A DNA stretch of 63,315 bases, filler included, from Pelomyxa schiedti (lineage: Eukaryota > Protista > Evosea): the NCBI GenBank assembly GCA_020536535.1. It is 10 parts of 10 records of this genome, joined end to end, with 100 filler letters (N's around TTAATTAATTAA, not from the genome) between each part and the next. Parts side by side here need not be neighbours in the genome. Positions count along the whole stretch, not along the records: positions 1 to 4,450 come from JAHLWZ010001593.1; 9 more parts are not named here. One strand, written 5' to 3'. Below are positions 1 through 10,379 of the stretch, piece after piece. Under the pieces are notes generated by a model. That model was not told the DNA's origin and did no database searches. It saw nothing but the letters and a program-made list of their open reading frames with translations. Position numbers and translations under genes: made by a program. Each line of letters opens with the position of its first letter. Positions within the stretch are counted from its first letter, which is position 1.

Positions 1-3000
1 TCCACAAGTCACCATCCTCTGCAATCGAGATCACTCGTTGTTCCATTGGATGCTGGTTTCGATGAAGAGGAACTTGCGATTTGAGAGATTTGTGAGAGAG
101 GATGGGAGTGGTGAGATGTCATCGAGGATTGCAGCGACCCTCTCAGGGGGTGCCTCTGGATCAATCGGAACGTATCCCGAGCCGGTTTTCAGAACTCCGT
201 AAAGTGCCACGAACTGCTCGATTGATCTCTCTGCAATGATCGGAATCAACTTCCCCGGTCCAACCTCCGAGAATGATGATTTGAGGAAGTGTGCAAGTTG
301 GTTTGCTCGGTTGTTGAGTTCATCATAGCTCACTGTTTCATTCCCGAACATCAAGGCTGGGAGATTTCCATGCTTTGTGACGAACTCCTCGAACAGGAAG
401 TGAACTGCTTTTCTCGTTTCTTCTGTGGTTGTGGTGTTGAACACCTTCTCTGTGGAATTCCACTCTTTCGCTCGAACTGGAGCTCAAGGGAACCGTCGAT
501 CTGTGGAACAGCATTGAGGGTGAGATCGAACTTGGACATGACGGGGTGGATGTTGTAAAGAAGCTTCACGTCTCTTATTCCTTCCATGGCGAAGTTCTTC
601 TTGTTCACGAACTTCCAGTCGTCCATCACGAAGCTGACTTGAACGAGTGTGTGCATGCTCAGCCTTGGCTCGATTCCAACAGTGTCAACAATCCAGTCCA
701 ATGGTACATCCTGTGCCTCTTGTGCAGCAAGAACCTTGCTTTTCACTGACTCCAGTGTTTCCTTGAACGATTTTGATTCCTCAATGGTGGTTCTGATGGG
801 GAGTGTGTTCACGAAGAACCCAATCAGAGATTCCACACCAGGGTAATGCCTGTTCGCTGTTGGAATCCCAACAACGATGTCACCTTGTGGATTGGATGGT
901 GGTGCTGTGGTGGCCTCTTTGTCTGTTTTGGACCACCTTGGACTGTGAAGGTGCAAAAGGATGTTGAACACAGTGAGAACTGTCATGAACGGTGTGGCTG
1001 TGCTCATGCTCTTTCCCAGTGTTGTCAACGCCGAAAACAGTGACGGTGGGATCATGTGGATGTGGAATCCAGCGGAATAAGTTCGGTTGTCAGTCCTTGG
1101 CCTGTCGAGCGGAAGTTCGCAAACTTGATTGACTCCCTCAAGTTCCTTCTTCCAGAACAAGAGCTGCTTCTCTTTCAGGTTGTTGGAAGTGTTGAGGAGC
1201 AGTTCCCTTTGCCAAACTGCAAAGTCAGAAAACTGAAACGCCAGTGCAGGTGGTTCTGGTGGGATTTGTTTAGGAGCTGCTGCGATCTTCTCAGCTTTGT
1301 TGCCATTTTTCAACTGTTGCTCAATGAGCTGTGGTAGTGAGGGTGAAGACACCACCACGCGGTTGTATTGGAGAGAGAGCTCCCTTGTGAAAACAACCAT
1401 TGACCACCCATCAGTGATGATGTGGTGCGCAATGACGAAAAGAACGGTCTCTTCTTCGTCAAGTCGGAACAGGGTGAGCCGCAGAAGGGGCCCTGATTTC
1501 AAGTCAAACGGAGTGCTCACTTCCTTTTGGAATTCACCATTGAGCCACTTCTGTTTTGCTTCCTCGGTACCGTAACAGCAAAGGCTTTCGGTTGGTCTGA
1601 TGTATTGCACTTCGCGGAACTGGATTGCGTGGTCAGCATCCTGCACAGGGAGGATCAACTGAAACCCTTGGGATGTTGTTGATGTTGCTTCTTCCTCGTG
1701 TTCTGTCACGAACCTTGTGCGGAGGCTCTCGTGTCGAATCACAACAGAGAGTGCTGCCTTCAGCATTGCGCCACCATCAAGATGTCCAAACAAATGGGCA
1801 CCACCAAAGACAGAGTACTGAACTGAGTTCGGTTGGAGCTGATCCAAGAAGAACAGCCTGTGTTGCGTCAGTGACAGTGGTGCAACCTTTTTGCTCGACG
1901 TTGATGCTGACAAGGGCTTGATTGGTGGGAACTTGAACTTTGTTGCCGAGTTGGTTGATGTGAGGAGAGATGCCATTGACCTGATTGTTCTGGATGCAAA
2001 CAAATCGCTGAGGTTGAGGCTCAACCCCCGTTTGTCAGCGGATGCAATTGCCTTGAGCATTCCGATTGAGTCACCACCAGCCTCGAAGAAGTCCTCATCG
2101 ATCGATGATGGTTGTGATGGGAGGACCTCGCACCAAATCTCGAGAACCTTTCTCTCCATTGGTGTCAGAGTCTCTGTGTCAATTTTCGTCCTCAAAGGTC
2201 CGGTTGATGACTGTGTTGAGGGAGGCACCTTACGGGGGTCGTCATGAGCAGTGCCGCAGTTGATTAGGGTGGACTTCTTCTTGAACACAGACGAGCATAA
2301 GGCGTGAGTTAAAAAACCAACACCTGGTGGTCCAAAATCAAATATCTCGACTGCATCGCATCCTCTGTTGTGGGATAGAATCGCTCTGTTCATGTGTTGG
2401 AAGCGAACTAGAAGGGAAAATTCACTTGACAGTTTCTGGCCAATTGATAGGGAGTCCCATTGAGTCCACGTGAACTTGATCGCAATAACGATGTGTGTCC
2501 CACTTCACAACACAACATATGTTAATTGTCAACCAGATCAAGAGGGAGGGAAGGCGTGAACAACCTGGGATGTGTCCGCATTTAAACTCGTGCTGAAAGA
2601 GGCGGCACTGTTTGGAACAGGATTCCAGAGGGGATACTTTGTGGGTGGGATGCGGCCAAGGAATAGATTCAAAGCTTCAGATTGATAAAACGGTGCATGG
2701 AAGCCCTCCGACACTGGCAGAACTTTTACTTGATGTGGAGGAAAAAGACTCTGAAGTTTGGCCAGAGGAGTCGGGTGACCTGGAAACCAACGAATCAGTG
2801 AATGGCAGAGGGATAAAGAATCAAGTGGTGGTACAAACCAGAGACAACTGACTGGGTGGGTGTCAACCTGATCGACACAAAAAGTGGTGTGGAGGGGAAC
2901 TCGGAATTCACAGCTTCAATGTACTTCTCAAGCATGGCAACTGGAACCTTGAACATGCACATCCAACTCTTGGACATCACTTCTTTCCCCCACTGTTTGT

Positions 3001-4450
3001 TGTGTTCCTCAAGGATTGCAAGGGTCAAACGAAATCCTCTTCTGACGCAATCCAAGCACATGGCTTGAAATTGGGCCACCGAATCTGCAGAATGCATTTT
3101 AGGAAAACGGTAGCATTCCCCACGTCGGAAAAGGGATTATGTGGAACCTGCTTTGAGGATGGCAGACGTAGGTATTTGTCCAGCAGAATAACCCACACAG
3201 ACATCAAATGACCTCGCAAAAGCAAAGAATCTCTTGTTGCCATCGGGGTCATCCTCATCAGTGGAGCCTTGTCCAAGAGCAGAAATAAGAAAACAAGCAC
3301 ACGAATATATCGTTTGCAGTGGGACGCAAAATAAAGTCATCCCAAGAAGGCTTTTTGGTGGCTGGCTCTCTCGGTCATGAACCCTTTTTAAAGCAATTAG
3401 TAATAATATTATTTTATTTCAACAAAGTTAAGGTGATTAGAAGTGTGTGTTTTCTATTATTATTTATTTTTGTTGTTTGTCGCCACAAAAAGCAAAAGGA
3501 CAAATCCACAACGAAAAATAATCTTCACAAAATTTCCCAATCCCACAATTTCGCGTGCTATATATTGCGTTGTTGGCACATACCACGAGTGGGGATCGTA
3601 TTTCCTCGAGATGGAGCCGTATGGCCTAAAGAACGCATCGGCATCGGCACCCACCGCGTCGCACAGCCGGTTCATCGTTATGGGTTTGTTCACCGTGCGC
3701 GACATCCCATCGCACACTCCGCGGATCCACGGTCCCACAATCCCCGGCGACGCCGCCGACCACCCCGCGAGTTTGTCGAGCAGCCACTTCGAGATGTCGG
3801 TGTCCTCGTTGAATCCTGAGCACAACGCGATCCTACGGCTGCGATGTATGGGAGGTGGCGCCGATGTAGATACGGCAGCGCTTCCGTCCGCCGGTGACGA
3901 ATTTCGTTGTTCTTGCGAATTTTCTTGGCCTCGTAGGCAAGGGGTAAAACTGGGACTGTTCATGAGTTGGTGCTGAGGGCTGCGAGTGGTTTGTTCTTTG
4001 TTGTTTGCGGTTACGGACACCCTGCGGAAAACACTTCGGGAGTTTCGCAAGTGCATTCCAGTGAAATCATCCGTGGTTGCTTTGTACAGTTGTAGTACTT
4101 GGTCCTCCTGACACTCAATCCTTGATGGGAATCGGAAGAGTGGCAGGGGAATTAAGAGAATTCTCCTTATCCCTTTCGTACGATCGGTTCGTAGTCCTGC
4201 AGGGTACACTACACTCCTACATCCCTACAACACGTTGAGTTGTTTGCCCCCAAAAGCCAGGGGGTCCAGGGTTGTTAAGAATTTGATGTCTAATAAGTTC
4301 AGGAACCGGCACAAGTTCCTGATGTCCAGCAAATTGTTCCGAATATCAGAGACGTCATGACAACAACAGCGCCGAACAACAGCCACTTCTCCTACGCACC
4401 TTGTGAGGCCACGCAAACCAGTAATTAATGTCCACGAGCCACCACGCCGA
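1..4450 (-). CDS. Hybrid megasynthase, partial at both ends: unknown N-terminus, FAS-beta-type starter acyltransferase (SAT/AT), carrier (T), condensation (LCL-like), adenylation (start only). Two apparent frame lesions
   Basis: GT-AG splicing (e.g. intron 3583-3384) joins in frame: IALCSGFNED, KYDPHSW|VHDRESQPPKSLLGMTLFCVPL, VGYSAGQ, VVSG|HP, LPVSEGFHAPF, PINWPETV, IFDFGP. Carrier motif DFFEAGGDS. C-domain motifs PLSLTQHRLFFLDQL, RHESLRT, HHIITDGWS, LPLDRPR, IGFFVNTLPIR, KFDLTL. A-domain motifs SYDELNNRANQLAH and LKTGSGYVPID. Confidence 0.9.
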
Positions 4451-4550: not shown

Positions 4551-5717
4551 TTTTGTTCCCTTCGTTGATTTCCTTTACACAGTTCAGCACAAGCCACTTC
4601 AACACATCCAAATGCCCATTTCTGCTCACTTCCTCCATGATGTGGAACACTCCCCTCTTGCCCCAGAATTCATCAAACAGAGTATCACCCCAATTACTCC
4701 CCACTGTTGACAAATCCAATAGGCTGGAGGAGCTCAGCTCGTCATGTGTGGTGACCCCAACCTAGAACAAAAATTCTTCAGAGCAGTTGCATGAGAGAGG
4801 GAGATAGACACACCACGCTGTCAGAACTTCTTCCAAGAATAGAATTGTCTCCGAAACTACCACTGCGTGGCCACAGACCCCACTTCTTTGCAAGTGTGGA
4901 GGATGAACTGCCACTGGTCTCTCCTCCCTCCTCACACCAGCACTCACACCCATTCTCCACGAACCTCTGAGCCATCTTCAAGTGTCCACCCACGCACAGC
5001 CCCCTCAGCACCGCCACCTGCTCCTTGGCCTTCCTCCTCCTCCCTCTCCATCTCCGTGTCCGTGTCCGTACCATCACCACCCCCTGCTGGTGATGACGTC
5101 AGGGGCAGCAGCAGGGCATTTCTGTAACCTGTCACATCCACACACGTGTCACCCTCCGTCTCCCACCAGCAGCAGCTCCCCATCACCCTGCTCGTTTTGT
5201 TTCTGATGAGCCACGCGACGCACCTCGGGCTGAGCGCCCCGGCGGCCGCCTCGATGGCCGCGTAGCGCCGCGAGCCGCAGTGGCACTTGCTGTGCAGAAG
5301 CAGCACGGCGCGGGAGGCCAGGGCCACCAGGGGGAACATCGCCTCGGCCGTGGCCAGCACGCACGACACCGTGGCGGGGCGAGGGAACAAGTCCCAGGTG
5401 TAGTAGCCAATGAACTTGGCAGGTTGCAGCAGCCAGGGCACCACCACTTGCTCCCACACGATACGAGACAGGGTCAAGATCGTAGTTGCGGGCGGAATGA
5501 AGTAGCTGTCACTACTTGATGGGTTGTGGAACTCGTGAGCGGGGATCGGCACCGCCGCCACGCTTTCGCTTTGGTTGTTCCTCATCAACGTTTTTCTTGT
5601 AACCATTTGAGGAGAATTTTCGTTTCGCCGCGTTTTGTTTTTGCAAAAGTGGCACAACGACTCCACAAACCCGCGTGGCGCCGCGGTCGCGCCGGTGTCC
5701 ACCGCCAGACGGGTCAC
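4551..5717 (-). CDS. Lineage-specific ankyrin-like repeat protein, 3-prime truncated by contig end, probably frameshifted near 5050-5100
   Basis: Ankyrin-like segments VLRGLCVGGHLKMAQRFV and EEVSRNGHLDVLKWLV lie in different frames from the upstream ORF 4944-5717. Confidence 0.5.
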
Positions 5718-5884
5718 AACAACAAACTACCTCGACGGAGTGACGAGTACCACGACGAGGTGGAGACCGCGAGGGGACCAAGTTGGTGCACCACCCGACG
5801 CACCCAACCCCCCTTGATGCGGCGCCCCCTCCTGCGACTTACGATGCCGACGACAGAGACAACAATGAATGTTTGAACTGATGT

Positions 5885-8607
5885 TCAGGAATTGAGGATG
5901 TTGAGGGCGGCAACAGCAGTGAGCCTGGCTGCTTTATCAGGGTCCATCATCCTAATCATCACTGACTCAAGCACTGAAACAGTGTGGGTGTTGTTCTGAT
6001 TGACATCTGGTGCTGCCGTCACTGCTGCTTTTGTTGGTTGTGGTTGCTGGTGGTGTCTTGACACTGATGAAAACAAAGGAATGCTGAACTCACTGAGGAG
6101 TGACTGGGTGTTGAAGGTGCTCATGTCATGGTTCAATGTGCTCCCAATGAATCTGTTGGATTGGGGCAGAAGAGCATCCCAAAAAGTGAGTGCAAGTGCA
6201 AAGGAGTCGCACTTTGAGTACGAGAACACACCACTTGTTCCCCTCGTGATCCTCTCGAGGAAAATGCTCAGCTCTGGTGGCATTGTGCCTGTGTTGCCCC
6301 AGGGTTGTGATGTGGCAGATATCATCATCTCCATGTTTGGGCAGTGCTGTGCCTCGCCAAAGTCGATGAGTGTCAGTTTCCCAATCTCTGGGTCAACGAG
6401 AATGTTGTCTCCCTTGATGTCCCTTGTTTGTTTTGTGAGACAAGGAGGATTGATTGGGCAAGGGGGATACAACCTGTGAACAACAAACTGTGACTCAATG
6501 TGGGAGATGGCCTTGAGTCCTTGAACAAACAGATTCTGTGCAACTTCAATTCTCATATTGTTGCAGGAGAGGAACGATGACAATGTGATGCCACAATGAG
6601 GCATGAGGATGGCCAACGACTTGTTGTCGCACAGCTCTCGAAAAATCGTTTGCTCTGTTGGTATTTTCTCGACAAATGGTGCTGGAAGGCTGTACAAAAA
6701 TTTCTTGAGTGAAAAGGCGGCTTGTGAAAATTACCAAGGGATGACCAAAGCACCAAGAGGGTGGATCACGTTTGGGTGATTGGGGACCAGTGAGAGTACA
6801 ACACACTCAGCCATGTATTTCCTCCGCAACGGCGTCTGTTGTGGGGTGTTCTCCCAGTTGAACATGATCTTCATCACCATGCCTGTTGTGGTTTTTGTTG
6901 GAGAAGCTGAAGCAGAAGAAGGTGCTGATGTTGGGGTGGTTGTGGAACTTTTTCTGCTGTTAGATGTTGCGGCTTTGAATTGTACTTTGAACACAGCAGC
7001 ATGTGAGCCTGTGCCAAGCAGTTTTTCCACCCAAAAATCACAAATATTTGCTGAAATCAGTGATGTCATTGTGTTAACAATTGCCTAATTGATTGGTGAT
7101 GATTGTGTATGTTTTGTGAGAGAAAGGAAGGAAACAACCTTGTATCTTTCCACTTCCTCTGTGCCGTATTTCCTCAGGTTTTCAACTGCAATTTGTTGTT
7201 GACATAGAGTTGCCTCTGTTTCCTTGAGACGCCTCACAAGTTGTTCCTTCTCCTTCTTTTTTTTAAAAAAGTGACTTTTAAAGTGACTTGTGTGTGAAGA
7301 GGAAGGAAGCTGCGAACCTTGTATCTTTCCACTTCTTCCACAAGTTGTTGCCTCATCTTTTCTGCCTGTGTCTGGACTAAGGTTTTTTAATGGTGGGGTA
7401 CTTAAACCTCTTCCTTCTCTTTTTCCAAGTTTGCCACTTGTTTCTTCAGAGAGCCAACCTGTTTCAAATTAATTTTTGAGTTAAAACTAACAAAACACAC
7501 CTCTGCAGAATGCCCCCTTTCTTGAAGGAGCTGTTCTTCCAAGTATTCAACTGTTTTTTTCAACTTGCCAACAATGGTATCTTGATGTTCTGCAGCCAAG
7601 TTGCACAGTGACCATGAAGGTGAAGAGGTCTCTGATGAGAGCATCTTGGCAGCACCTACGTGACCAAACTGAGCAGCCATCGCCAGCCAGTGTTCAGCAC
7701 CATCCCCAAGACACACACCAAGGTGAAACATTGAAACTGCATCACCACCCTCAGCACCCATCTGGAAATATCGAACAGCAGCTCTCTTGTCTGTTGGTGC
7801 TCCACAGTCTCCCCTTTGACAATGCTCTCCCAGTTCCCCAAGTGCCACTGCACCCCATGCTACCCTCTTTGCCTCGTTGAAAAACTCATTTGCCTTTCTG
7901 CTGTCCAGGTCAACACCAATGCCCCTCTCATGACAATACCCAAGGAACACCTTGGCCTTGTAACTGAGATAAGTCCCTGCAGCACCACTGTTGAGCAGTT
8001 CCACACCCTTGACCACATCCCTTGCCACACCACACCCCCACAAGTAGCACCACCCAAGGTATGCCTGCGCCTCTCTGCTGTAACTGGCAGACTGTTGGAA
8101 GAGATCCACAGCCTTTGCCCAGTCGATCTGTACACCATCACCACACAGATAACACGCACCAAGCCGCCACGAGTGCGCCTTGTCTCTGGCGATTGCGGCA
8201 GTGTAGAGTGACACGGCCCTCTGTTTGTCACACTCCACACCCACGCCGTGCTGGCAGCACCACCCGAGCCGAACCATTGCATCAGCATAGCCCAAGTCAG
8301 CAGCCATGTTCCACACAGACACCGCCTTGTACATGTCACGGCCGTACACATCACCAGGACTGTTGTAGTACTCATACGCAACCAACAACAGGCCACCGCC
8401 ATCGCGTGCGGCGCGGTACCAGCGCAGTGCCGCGTCCAAGTTCTTGACCAATCCACGGAGACCACTTTGGTAACACCGAGCAAGTTCACTCATTGCATTG
8501 GCGTCGCCTTTGTTTGCCTGCTCAACGAGTGAACCAATGTCACCTACGGTGTGTGTTGCTGCTGTGGCAGCGACCATTGCATATGATACCCAACCAACAG
8601 AACTCAT
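5885..8607 (-). CDS. Sel1/TPR-repeat, coiled-coil, Ser/Thr protein kinase fusion (multi-exon)
   Basis: Sel1 repeats (AMSELARCYQSG, AMVRLGWCCQHGVGV, AQAYLGWCYLWGCGV). Short exons at about 7140-7255 and 7320-7373 splice in frame to the kinase exon (LLGTGSHAAVFKV, VMKIM). A 51-nt intron (6473-6423) restores HRDIKGDN. DFG and CDSFALAL are present. Confidence 0.85.
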
Positions 8608-8841
8608 ATTTATTATTATCCTTCTTTGTTAGTCACAAACTGAGTTGCTCCAACGCGGCATTAAATGAAATCGGGTTGTGAAACCCAAATTCACCAGACT
8701 TGAAATCGCGATTGCGTGGAAGACATCAAGTGATCAACGGAAAAAATCACCGACATCTTCCGCACTTGGTTGGTGTTAAGGAAAATGTTAACAACCATGT
8801 ATATTATCTATTCATTTTAATGTAATAGAATGCATAGGGCA

Positions 8842-8895
8842 CGATCCTGAGCAACGATAACGAAAATGACAGCGTTCCGGTCTGTTGATTATTTT
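8842..8895 (-). promoter_or_regulatory. Conserved 54-bp non-coding motif, copy 1
   Basis: Reverse complement matches 27484-27537 at 50 of 54 positions. It lies about 235 bp upstream of the Sel1-kinase ATG, in sense orientation. Confidence 0.55.
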
Positions 8896-8960
8896 ATTCC
8901 ACGTTCTGGACAGCCACTTCGGGAATTCATTTCCACGTTTTTCTTGTGATTAGACTAAAC

Positions 8961-10379
8961 TCAGGAAGCATATGAGTAGCTGAGGAAAGCCAGAAGAGTG
9001 TCGGTCTCAGCATCAGTGATTACATACCTGCCTGGTTGTGACACACAACCCCACAAAAGAACTCCACCCACAAACTGGACCTGTGGGCTCCCCAGAAACT
9101 TCATTCGGGAACCATCTTGTGCATGTGGTATAACTCTCTCACAGTGGACGGTGCAGCATGGTGTTGAGAGGTTTCTGGCGTGGAACACCTGGAAAACATC
9201 ATCTGATGGTGCTGCACCAAAAAGGGTGCAACTGATTTGCCACGGCAAGCCATGAAAGGTGTTGGTATGTTTGGTGGTGGTGTCGAAGATGTTGAAACCC
9301 GCACCATGCTTCCCAACAGAAACAATGCGAATGGGATCACAACCCAGAATGCCAATGTGATGCCACCATCTGAGGTCCATTGGGAGAGGCAACGGCTCAC
9401 TCTTGAGCACAAGCTCCCTCTGGTTGAAGCTCTCCTTCAAGTCAATGTGCCACAGGAAAGACGTCAACCCTCCATCTGTTGGGTTTGAAGCTGTCACGAG
9501 CAACACGTCAGGATCATCCTCATAGAATGCAGCATCGATAGGGTGCTGAGTCACACTGATTTTTGCGGCTCTGCCACCCAGCAGAACGTCGTCAGGACCA
9601 CCCAGCCTCCACAATGCCACCCCCGTTCCCTCGGTCAACACAATCCACCTTCTGTTGCACAACTGGTGGTTCACAACATCAGGGGACCAATCCGTTGTAT
9701 AGCCCATGTGCGCAGACACCCTGCGCCCACTGCCACTGACAATCTCCATGGCAACCCCAACTACCCCAGGGCCCTTCTTCACCACAACCAGCCTCTCACT
9801 CTCACCTTCAGTCCTGCTTGTACTTTGCGTCATTGTAGCCTCCGAGGCCCCTACCTCTCCCGCCGACGCCGATGATGATGATGATGAAGATGATGACGAC
9901 GATGGTGGTTGTGGTGGTGGTTGTGGTGGCGACACACGCCCAATGTGGCCGATCAGCTGGCCGAATTCCTGGTCATCGTAGGTCACCACGAACTGCGCGG
10001 ACCTCACGACGCCCAGAGTCGGGGACAGGCACAGCCACAAGTGCGCCTTGGCGTAGCTCCTCCACTGGTCGCCGGGCCGCGTGATCTCCACCGACACGGT
10101 CCCCGCCACGTCCCGGCACCCGCACACCACCCAGTCCCGCCCGAGCTGCGCGAGCACCGACGGCGACGAGGCGAGGAGCCGCGTTGCTGGCGACGCCTGG
10201 CTGGTCCTGGCCACGGCCGACCCGCACGCGAACGCGACGAACTGGTCCGCGGCAGACAGGGCGACGTCGAGGGTGATTGTGGGTGCGCTGTGTGCGCAAG
10301 GCGGAAATACTGCTGCTGTGGGTGGTGACGATGTGGCGGGAGTTGACTTTCTGTTTGTGCTGCTGGTTGTGTTGCCCAT
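8961..10379 (-). CDS. Intronless lineage-specific protein, possibly N-myristoylated (MGNTTS), with N-terminal DQFVAF module and possible degenerate beta-propeller
   Basis: Open frame of about 470 codons. The module AADQFVAFACGS...QLGRDWV resembles the one in the ORF at 27687. Confidence 0.7.
   Translation of the reverse strand: MGNTTSSTNRKSTPATSSPPTAAVFPPCAHSAPTITLDVALSAADQFVAFACGSAVARTSQASPATRLLASSPSVLAQLGRDWVVCGCRDVAGTVSVEITRPGDQWRSYAKAHLWLCLSPTLGVVRSAQFVVTYDDQEFGQLIGHIGRVSPPQPPPQPPSSSSSSSSSSSASAGEVGASEATMTQSTSRTEGESERLVVVKKGPGVVGVAMEIVSGSGRRVSAHMGYTTDWSPDVVNHQLCNRRWIVLTEGTGVALWRLGGPDDVLLGGRAAKISVTQHPIDAAFYEDDPDVLLVTASNPTDGGLTSFLWHIDLKESFNQRELVLKSEPLPLPMDLRWWHHIGILGCDPIRIVSVGKHGAGFNIFDTTTKHTNTFHGLPWQISCTLFGAAPSDDVFQVFHARNLSTPCCTVHCERVIPHAQDGSRMKFLGSPQVQFVGGVLLWGCVSQPGRYVITDAETDTLLAFLSYSYAS

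Follow-up and report, generated by a model that had tools for sequence, protein, structure and literature searches.

A spliced gene of the amoeba Pelomyxa schiedti joins a SAT-like acyltransferase to the carrier and condensation domains of a non-ribosomal peptide synthetase

Genes for a non-ribosomal peptide synthetase (NRPS) are uncommon among protists. The known modes of acyl priming of such synthetases are limited in number and well documented, comprising a starter condensation (C) domain, a fatty acyl-AMP ligase (FAAL) acting together with an acyl carrier protein (ACP) and, in fungi, a free acyltransferase. Loading by an acyltransferase (AT-ACP) or a GNAT enzyme (GNAT-ACP) ahead of a cyclisation (Cy) or C domain is known as well, for example from the epothilone and rhizoxin assembly lines, where the loading enzyme is a FabD-type AT or a GNAT and is usually accompanied by a domain resembling a ketosynthase (KS). 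Here we describe a gene in a 63,315-nucleotide stretch of DNA (hereafter the window) from the anaerobic amoeba Pelomyxa schiedti, joined from ten parts of ten records of assembly GCA_020536535.1. The gene lies on the minus strand of the first part (positions 1–4450, JAHLWZ010001593.1; hereafter the piece). In it, a domain resembling the starter unit:ACP transacylase (SAT) of polyketide synthases of the non-reducing kind (NR-PKSs) precedes a carrier (T) domain, a C domain and the beginning of an adenylation (A) domain. We consider it probable that this is the 5′ portion, 4 kb long, of one member of an NRPS family confined to Pelomyxa, whose initiation module has the order SAT-like acyltransferase-T-C-A.

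In the fungal biosynthesis of emericellamide, W493-B and scopularide, the NRPS (EasA) begins with T-C-A, and its first T domain is charged by the freestanding acyltransferase EasC together with the CoA ligase EasD (PMC3901194, PMC4515620). This form of lipoinitiation is the closest functional analogue of the arrangement proposed for Pelomyxa, in that it is an acyltransferase, rather than an adenylating enzyme or a starter C domain, that charges an N-terminal T domain ahead of C-A; EasC, however, is a separate protein, whereas the Pelomyxa acyltransferase is fused in cis. In the surfactin and daptomycin systems, which have a starter C domain, and in the FAAL-T-C arrangement of PvdL, a C domain likewise joins an acyl group to the first amino acid, an outcome that would be shared by Pelomyxa, but the N-terminus of the Pelomyxa protein carries neither a starter C domain nor an adenylating ligase, and its C domain is internal, following SAT-T. 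As in epothilone- and rhizoxin-type loading, a carrier loaded by an acyltransferase would feed a condensation-type domain of an NRPS; the differences are that the Pelomyxa acyltransferase is of SAT type, that Pfam searches detected no KS domain in the window or its paralogues, and that the host is a eukaryote, as opposed to the bacterial hybrid lines. NR-PKS SAT domains, such as that of PksA, resemble the Pelomyxa domain in standing at the N-terminus of a megasynthase, in passing the Pfam SAT threshold, in having a GxS/CxG elbow with a downstream His, and in a presumed role of placing a starter acyl unit onto a carrier. Unlike them, the Pelomyxa domain precedes NRPS T-C-A rather than KS-AT-PT-ACP, and thus falls outside the strict-sense definition of a SAT; its nucleophile is usually Ser, with Cys in a single paralogue (P0122), its host is an amoeba and not a fungus, and it has no significant pairwise similarity to any SAT.

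The plus strand of the piece lacks a long open reading frame (ORF), and the minus strand presents a chain of open segments. Joining exons 4224–3584, 3383–3148, 3084–2839, 2779–2565, 2502–2426 and 2385–354 gave 1149 codons free of stops, and the gene spans 3963 to 471 (minus strand) as one open frame through five GT-AG introns of 200, 63, 59, 62 and 40 nt. The sequence-only reading had proposed that canonical introns join 4196 to about 460 in one frame; the five introns and the stop-free frame agree with this, but the adenylation part lies out of frame (breaks at 470–464 and 105–104). Exon 1 (3584–3963) opens at a likely start codon at 3963, with an in-frame alternative ATG at 4056 and an open frame from 4224, and codes for the N-terminal portion of the SAT-like domain, beginning with RRIALCSGF (3837) and reaching KYDPHSW, colinear with the N-termini of paralogues P0002 and P0121. 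Exon 2 (3148–3383), identical to the corresponding part of the GenBank protein P0127, runs from VHDRESQP to LFCVPL and holds the nucleophile elbow GYSAG (3193–3179). Exon 3 (2839–3084) encodes the helical middle of the acyltransferase down to VVSG, and the SAT match on the piece falls here; exon 4 (2565–2779) continues with HPTPLAKL and the His motif LPVSEGFHAP (2708–2691), and the 77-nt exon 5 (2426–2502) with GLPINWPETVK. Exon 6 (471–2385) is free of introns and encodes the end of the acyltransferase (DFGPPG, 2339–2322), the carrier domain and a complete condensation domain. All motifs quoted in the sequence-only reading were found, namely KYDPHSW and VHDRESQP on either side of the first junction, LFCVPL, GYSAG, VVSGHP, LPVSEGFHAP, PINW, DFGP, GGDS and HHIITDG.

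Four public sequencing runs were mapped onto the piece, two genomic (including X1) and two single-cell RNA-seq runs (X3 and X4) labelled as protist metagenome, with run contigs accepted at 90% likeness or above. Splice joints were confined to the RNA runs, and all four read CT..AC on the plus strand, that is, GT..AG on the minus strand. Joints 3084>3148 (intron 2, 3085–3147, 63 nt), 2777>2837 (intron 3, 2780–2838, 59 nt) and 2502>2565 (intron 4, 2503–2564, 62 nt) were seen in X3, the second of these with the cut displaced by +2 and the ends canonical after that shift. Joint 2385>2426 (intron 5, 2386–2425, 40 nt), which connects the acyltransferase exons to the T-C exon, was present in both X3 and X4. 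A genomic contig from X1 covered 2295–2567 without mismatch and ran unspliced through two introns, and an RNA contig covered 2670–2780 with 0 mismatches. Intron 1 (3384–3583, 200 nt, GTATGT..AAAAAG, AT-rich) had no RNA cover in these runs and was accepted because the frame needs its removal, because P0002 is colinear across the junctions (its counterpart of intron 1 being a 201-nt gap) and because the introns of P0002, P0121 and P0122 are placed at the same sites. The spliced window protein was colinear with P0002 over 1032 residues, through every junction, at 72% identity. Four of the five predicted splices were thus seen in RNA, and all five match annotated P. schiedti paralogues. The acyltransferase exons and T-C are co-transcribed, not transcribed separately: they form one spliced gene with one transcript. 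The gene is real and spliced, and its host is P. schiedti. The length of intron 1 differs from copy to copy (200 nt in the window, ~ 60–70 nt in P0121 and P0122), and genomic-run contigs carry, at 3388–3577, forms of it that are 170 and 174 nt shorter.

At least seven acyltransferase-bearing loci exist in Pelomyxa. Their domain orders are represented by P0002 (5.3 kb contig, SAT-T-C), P0121 (71 kb contig, SAT-T-C-A) and P0122 (23 kb contig, L004:10001–16507, SAT-T-C-A-T-C). Window positions 4054–471 match 5696–9280 of JAHLWZ010001291.1 (L001) of the same assembly at 99.4%, with 100% identity over 3046–838 (the upstream ~ 2.2 kb), and for these reasons the window is regarded as another version of the L001 locus. 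Over 4054–4450 the identity to L001 falls from 99–100% to 94%, with five gaps; this drop in the 5′ flank may be allelic or copy-specific variation.

The Pfam SAT family (PF16073, gathering cut-off 22.8 bits) matched window exons 2–4 (equivalent to P0127:1–218) with 41.9 bits (E = 1.2e-10), although on the single open segment 3136–2798 the match was weak (E = 7.5e-4). Five of six paralogues matched at 28–42 bits (best E = 1.5e-10), P0125 alone scoring below the cut-off (20 bits). Acyl_transf_1 (PF00698, the FabD/PKS malonyl type) had no match in the six paralogues at E ≤ 10 or in the window pieces at E ≤ 1, and NCBIfam gave no match on the acyltransferase. The earlier assignment to the SAT kind, as distinct from a FabD-like enzyme, is therefore upheld by a PF16073 score above the cut-off together with the absence of Acyl_transf_1 even at E = 10. 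In alignment, the GYSAG elbow and the His of the E(G/A)FH columns were kept in every full-length paralogue over 42–80% identity; the nucleophile is Cys, the residue classically found in SAT domains, in P0122 (GYCGG) and Ser elsewhere, and such alternation of Ser and Cys is typical of SAT domains. Protein-language-model feature neighbours in the ESM Atlas were headed by SAT clusters (top score 0.94, with 197 features in common); clusters of bacterial FAS-AT/SAT and of MAT came next.

A more specific placement was not supported. PF16073 takes in NR-PKS SAT domains and presumably also the acetyltransferase of fungal and bacterial fatty acid synthases (FASs), with which the Atlas cluster labels agree. 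A profile search of solved structures returned non-significant but colinear alignments to the beta chain of a fungal-type FAS (7q5s_B, E = 0.8), at the W..P...P...L....PL and VVSG.P stretches, and to PksA (8cg4_A, E = 0.83), at the nucleophile elbow (GFCMG in PksA). The likeness to the AT of type I FAS beta is thus no better than that to PksA, the other FAS domains are absent from the Pelomyxa gene, and the FAS elbow reads GHSQG, as against GYSAG in Pelomyxa. An exhaustive phmmer search with P0002 residues 1–420 against 1.84 billion representative proteins gave five proteins at E ≤ 0.001, all from P. schiedti, and a word-indexed search with the same residues, as well as a profile search at E ≤ 10, returned Pelomyxa proteins or fragments only. 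The description of the domain as fungal-FAS-type is too specific, because the FAS beta chain and PksA were equally non-significant and the search of 1.84 billion proteins gave no FAS protein and no relative outside Pelomyxa. As far as its sequence goes, the acyltransferase is an orphan lineage, assignable to the FAS branch no more than to the NR-PKS branch.

Downstream of the acyltransferase, the 717-codon segment 2504–354 matched PP-binding (PF00550, E = 6e-12) and Condensation (PF00668, E = 5e-59), while AMP-binding (PF00501, E = 4e-19) was found in segment 483–34, where the piece holds the first ~ 150 residues only. All three expected Pfam families thus match, but the adenylation domain in the window is neither complete nor in frame. 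The carrier domain (about 2153–1962) has its serine site in FFEAGGDS (GGDS at 2078–2067). The condensation domain (1886–471; HHIITDG at 1427–1407) contains LSLTQHRLFF, RHESLRTRF, HHIITDGWS, FSDFAVWQ, IGFFVNTLPIR and AQDVPLDW, which we take to be motifs C1 to C6. These matches mark T, C and A as NRPS domains of the standard kind. Within NCBIfam, the window T-C matched best to positions 581–1071 of PRK05691, a Pseudomonas synthetase model.

Among solved relatives, the C domain ranked highest with Txo2 (E = 7e-48), Txo1 (E = 9e-44), TycC6 (E = 3e-28) and LgrA (~ E = 1e-23), with a cross-module construct and fuscachelin PCP-C also among the top entries, and far lower with the surfactin starter C domain (E = 1.5e-11) and a fungal PKS-NRPS (E = 2e-13). 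The C domain therefore goes with bacterial elongation-type (LCL-like) domains, as the sequence-only reading had it, the subtype being given by this ranking of solved relatives. The T-C exon matched P0001 (696 aa, 91% identity) and P0002 (1026 aa, 69% identity), both named ‘non-ribosomal peptide synthetase [Pelomyxa schiedti]’, and its named matches outside Pelomyxa were all bacterial, at 26–36% identity. In a FastTree phylogeny of 121 C domains, drawn from the T-C exon matches and lacking eukaryotic references, the five Pelomyxa C domains formed one clade (support 100) on a long stem, with a Pyrinomonadaceae sequence as nearest neighbour at 2.2–2.5 substitutions per site. The sequence-only reading had seen a hint of a more recently acquired bacterial module; the bacterial-type affinity stands, whereas recency does not, because the clade is long-stemmed and over 2 substitutions per site separate it from the closest bacterial sequence, leaving no recent donor visible. 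At window positions 1281–1341, contigs from X1, X2 and X4 have 7 other letters in place of 61 nt (the SSPSLPQLIEQQLKNGNK region), a paralogue-specific indel in a poorly conserved variable loop of the C domain.

The clustering of introns in the acyltransferase part, noted from the window alone, recurred in every paralogue. The window has five introns in 1154 coding nt of acyltransferase (~ one per 230 nt), and annotated proteins mapped on their contigs place the same five introns in this part of P0002, P0121 and P0122. The NRPS sequence is without introns over 2–5 kb, forming a single exon of at least 3.0 kb in P0121 and of 5.06 kb in P0122 (T-C-A-T-C). P. schiedti genes have a mean of 7.43 introns (PMC8887013), and neighbouring genes are 14–34% intronic by span (our own arithmetic). 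An intron-free NRPS is unlikely by chance, because roughly ten introns would be expected per 5 kb at a rate of one per 500 nt (a rough estimate). The asymmetry supports different histories for the acyltransferase and NRPS parts; an alternative is 3′-biased intron loss through recombination with cDNA. The C-terminal ~ 45 residues of the acyltransferase (AILSHN..DFGPPG..) belong to exon 6 as well, so that exon border and domain border do not coincide and a border between the two histories, if real, would lie inside an exon.

A contaminant contig, or one in which a eukaryotic acyltransferase gene and a bacterial NRPS gene had been joined artificially, would also be expected to combine exclusively bacterial T-C relatives outside Pelomyxa with an intron-free NRPS part, and bacterial symbionts do live in this amoeba (PMC10579272). 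Yet the splice between acyltransferase and T-C occurs in RNA from two runs, and the end of the acyltransferase is itself encoded in exon 6. The same fusion recurs on at least four independent contigs of up to 71 kb that also carry intron-rich eukaryotic genes, the GC content is even across the join, and in the C-domain tree Pelomyxa stands as a single clade remote from bacteria. We give this explanation next to no weight; in the form of contamination or chimerism of the whole contig, it is rejected in view of the RNA splice, the repeated fusion, the even GC content and the Pelomyxa C clade.

The downstream end of the window copy is damaged or mis-assembled. At the C/A lesion (464–470), the linker at 470 has 1 nt, compared to 140 nt in L001 and L002 (L001:9281–9420), a net loss of 139 nt or ~ 46 codons that shifts the frame at the C/A junction. 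In L001 and L002 the C domain reads in frame via a normal linker (..LELQFEFAKDILDDST..KSLTVW.STEKVF..) into A, and P0121 and P0122 have a full C-A linker with A in frame. Contigs of X1 (DNA) and X3 (RNA) depart from the window at 463 and 471 and continue with undeleted sequence, and a paralogue contig of X4 has 144 extra letters at the C-A linker. The N-terminal part of the adenylation domain (106–463, in a frame other than that of C; located by tblastn with P0121 and P0122) contains A1 (VSYDELN) and A2 (LKTGSGYVPID). A second shift, of 1 nt, lies at 105–104 (between ISPLP and ILSHKSL), where a run contig departs at 104 with an intact frame; beyond it, the adenylation domain continues in a third frame (2–105; ILSHKSLKSQ..EDGDLW) to the edge of the piece. 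Two ways of bridging the first lesion by splicing were rejected. A 14-nt GT..AG ‘intron’ at 463–450 that would connect the C and A frames is far below real intron sizes, and L001 and L002 give in-frame sequence there; nor is the 139-nt gap an intron, as the missing L001 segment lacks a GT start and an AG end.

The terminal ~ 450 nt of the two GenBank contigs (L001:9160–9608 and L002:4860–5305) are 99–100% identical, and each contig stops at the base corresponding to window position 282, the signature of a repeat at the start of the A domain that is shared by paralogues and breaks assembly. Two readings of the lesions were weighed. Were the window copy a real disabled allele or decaying duplicate, with SAT-T-C intact and A destroyed, it could yield no more than a truncated SAT-T-C protein. 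In line with such decay, the frame is broken independently at two places within 370 nt, and the family has many copies, several of which are fragmentary; the stretch 469–282, which differs by 4% from both L001 and L002 whereas the 2.2 kb upstream of it equals L001, fits a distinct copy. However, DNA and RNA contigs depart exactly at 463, 471 and 104 into undeleted sequence, with no bridging contig among those listed, and L001 and L002 stop at the same base in the A stretch, the mark of an assembly-breaking repeat. Moreover, the sequences derive from single cells after amplification, a treatment prone to chimeric joins. An assembly fault (or amplification chimera) in the paralogue repeat is the most likely cause of the A-domain breaks, mis-assembly being preferred because the near-identical ends of L001 and L002 stop at the same base; a genuinely disabled copy seems unlikely, albeit by no means negligible.

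On the reading of an acyl-primed initiation module, whose chemistry as put forward in the sequence-only reading is plausible, the acyltransferase would accept an acyl group onto Ser279 (Cys in P0122), the donor being either acyl-CoA or a carrier belonging to a fatty acid or polyketide synthase, and pass it to the phosphopantetheine of the adjacent T domain. The C domain would then couple the acyl group to the amino acid on the following A-T, beginning an N-acylated peptide, and in P0122 the line would be extended by a further T-C. The product may be exported by an adjoining MFS transporter. Such a module would represent a cis-fused version of fungal lipoinitiation. The motifs themselves are intact: the acyltransferase Ser/His pair, GGDS as the site of phosphopantetheine attachment, and the set of C motifs including HHxxxDG.

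Alternatively, the acyltransferase could serve as a docking or gate domain of low catalytic activity, or transfer an unusual unit (carboxylated, hydroxy- or amino-acyl) from a partner carrier, in which case the product would not be a simple N-acyl peptide. This would suit the extreme divergence of the domain, for which the search of 1.84 billion proteins gave no homologues beyond Pelomyxa. An Arg or Lys-Arg is found ~ 27 residues past the Ser in the window and in P0002, though not in the other paralogues, and the carboxylate-binding Arg of FabD lies near that place. On the other hand, preservation of Ser/Cys and His in all full-length paralogues over 42–80% identity argues for catalysis, and the place directly before a T domain is that of a loading enzyme. 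We judge a docking role or an unusual unit to be improbable compared to acyl loading.

Several points nevertheless weigh against the proposed module. Acyl loading followed by N-acylation of an amino acid is a role that we infer. SAT domains are reported to be dispensable in some PKSs, including NR-PKSs that function without their SAT (PMC10401856), which would also accord with a docking domain. In the form in which it stands in the window, the copy would be unable to produce a complete module, because its A domain is twice out of frame, and no gene end or terminal release domain was present in any contig seen. Some of the RNA joints may stem from paralogues, because run contigs were accepted at 90% likeness. 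Finally, AlphaFold2 on a six-sequence alignment of the acyltransferase gave a low-confidence model (pLDDT 37.7, pTM 0.31) for a domain whose presumed acyltransferase fold would comprise a hydrolase-like core and a small ferredoxin-like subdomain.

Taking these points together with the above, we put forward only tentatively, and with less than even confidence, the broader proposal that Pelomyxa built an undescribed initiation module and expanded it to at least seven loci. It would consist of an orphan SAT-type transacylase cis-fused to T-C-A, would use neither a fatty-acyl ligase nor a starter C domain for acyl priming, would have arisen from an intron-bearing eukaryotic acyltransferase gene and an intron-less NRPS of bacterial ancestry, and would make N-acyl peptides, exported by MFS transporters, that could act on symbionts or competitors. 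If true, a SAT loader fused to T-C-A would offer a compact lipoinitiation module on a single polypeptide and a candidate for NRPS engineering. It would also imply a capacity for secondary metabolism in an anaerobic amoeba whose obligate consortium includes bacteria as well as a methanogen, a setting in which small molecules could be important; N-acyl peptides could target the obligate prokaryotic symbionts or competitors in anoxic sediment. The intron contrast itself would provide a clean case of how eukaryotes fuse native and foreign gene parts.

The SAT-NRPS genes are not new to GenBank, but their annotation is wrong and they have drawn no discussion. The locus is divided there between two models, Pelo_17241 (P0127, 226 aa), which begins at an internal Met of exon 2 and extends into intron 4, and P0001, which wrongly begins within intron 5. 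The models at L001:6410–9539 and L002:1625–5236 contain extra, false ‘introns’ of 43–49 nt. One of 48 nt deletes the conserved C1 motif, and one of 43 nt (GTGTGG..CCACAG), across which RNA and genomic sequence is continuous, shifts the frame at the C-A linker so that the model ends before A. With such models in the databases, surveys that rely on them will miss the SAT-NRPS architecture. The P. schiedti genome papers mention neither NRPSs nor polyketides, and the Mastigamoeba genome paper does not mention NRPSs. No description of a SAT-T-C or SAT-T-C-A architecture was found in the literature, domain-architecture databases lying outside the search.

Ordinary eukaryotic genes, among them those for a pseudouridine synthase and EF-hand/LIM proteins, also occur on the paralogue contigs. 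No CoA ligase or PKS was seen beside the Pelomyxa SAT-NRPS genes. In L001 (2367–6139) and L004 (6690–8788) alike, a divergently oriented gene for an MFS_1 transporter is found upstream of the NRPS gene, and MFS_1 and SAT-NRPS may be a conserved synthetase-exporter pair. In addition, a fragment of a class III aminotransferase is located at L004:1–1167.

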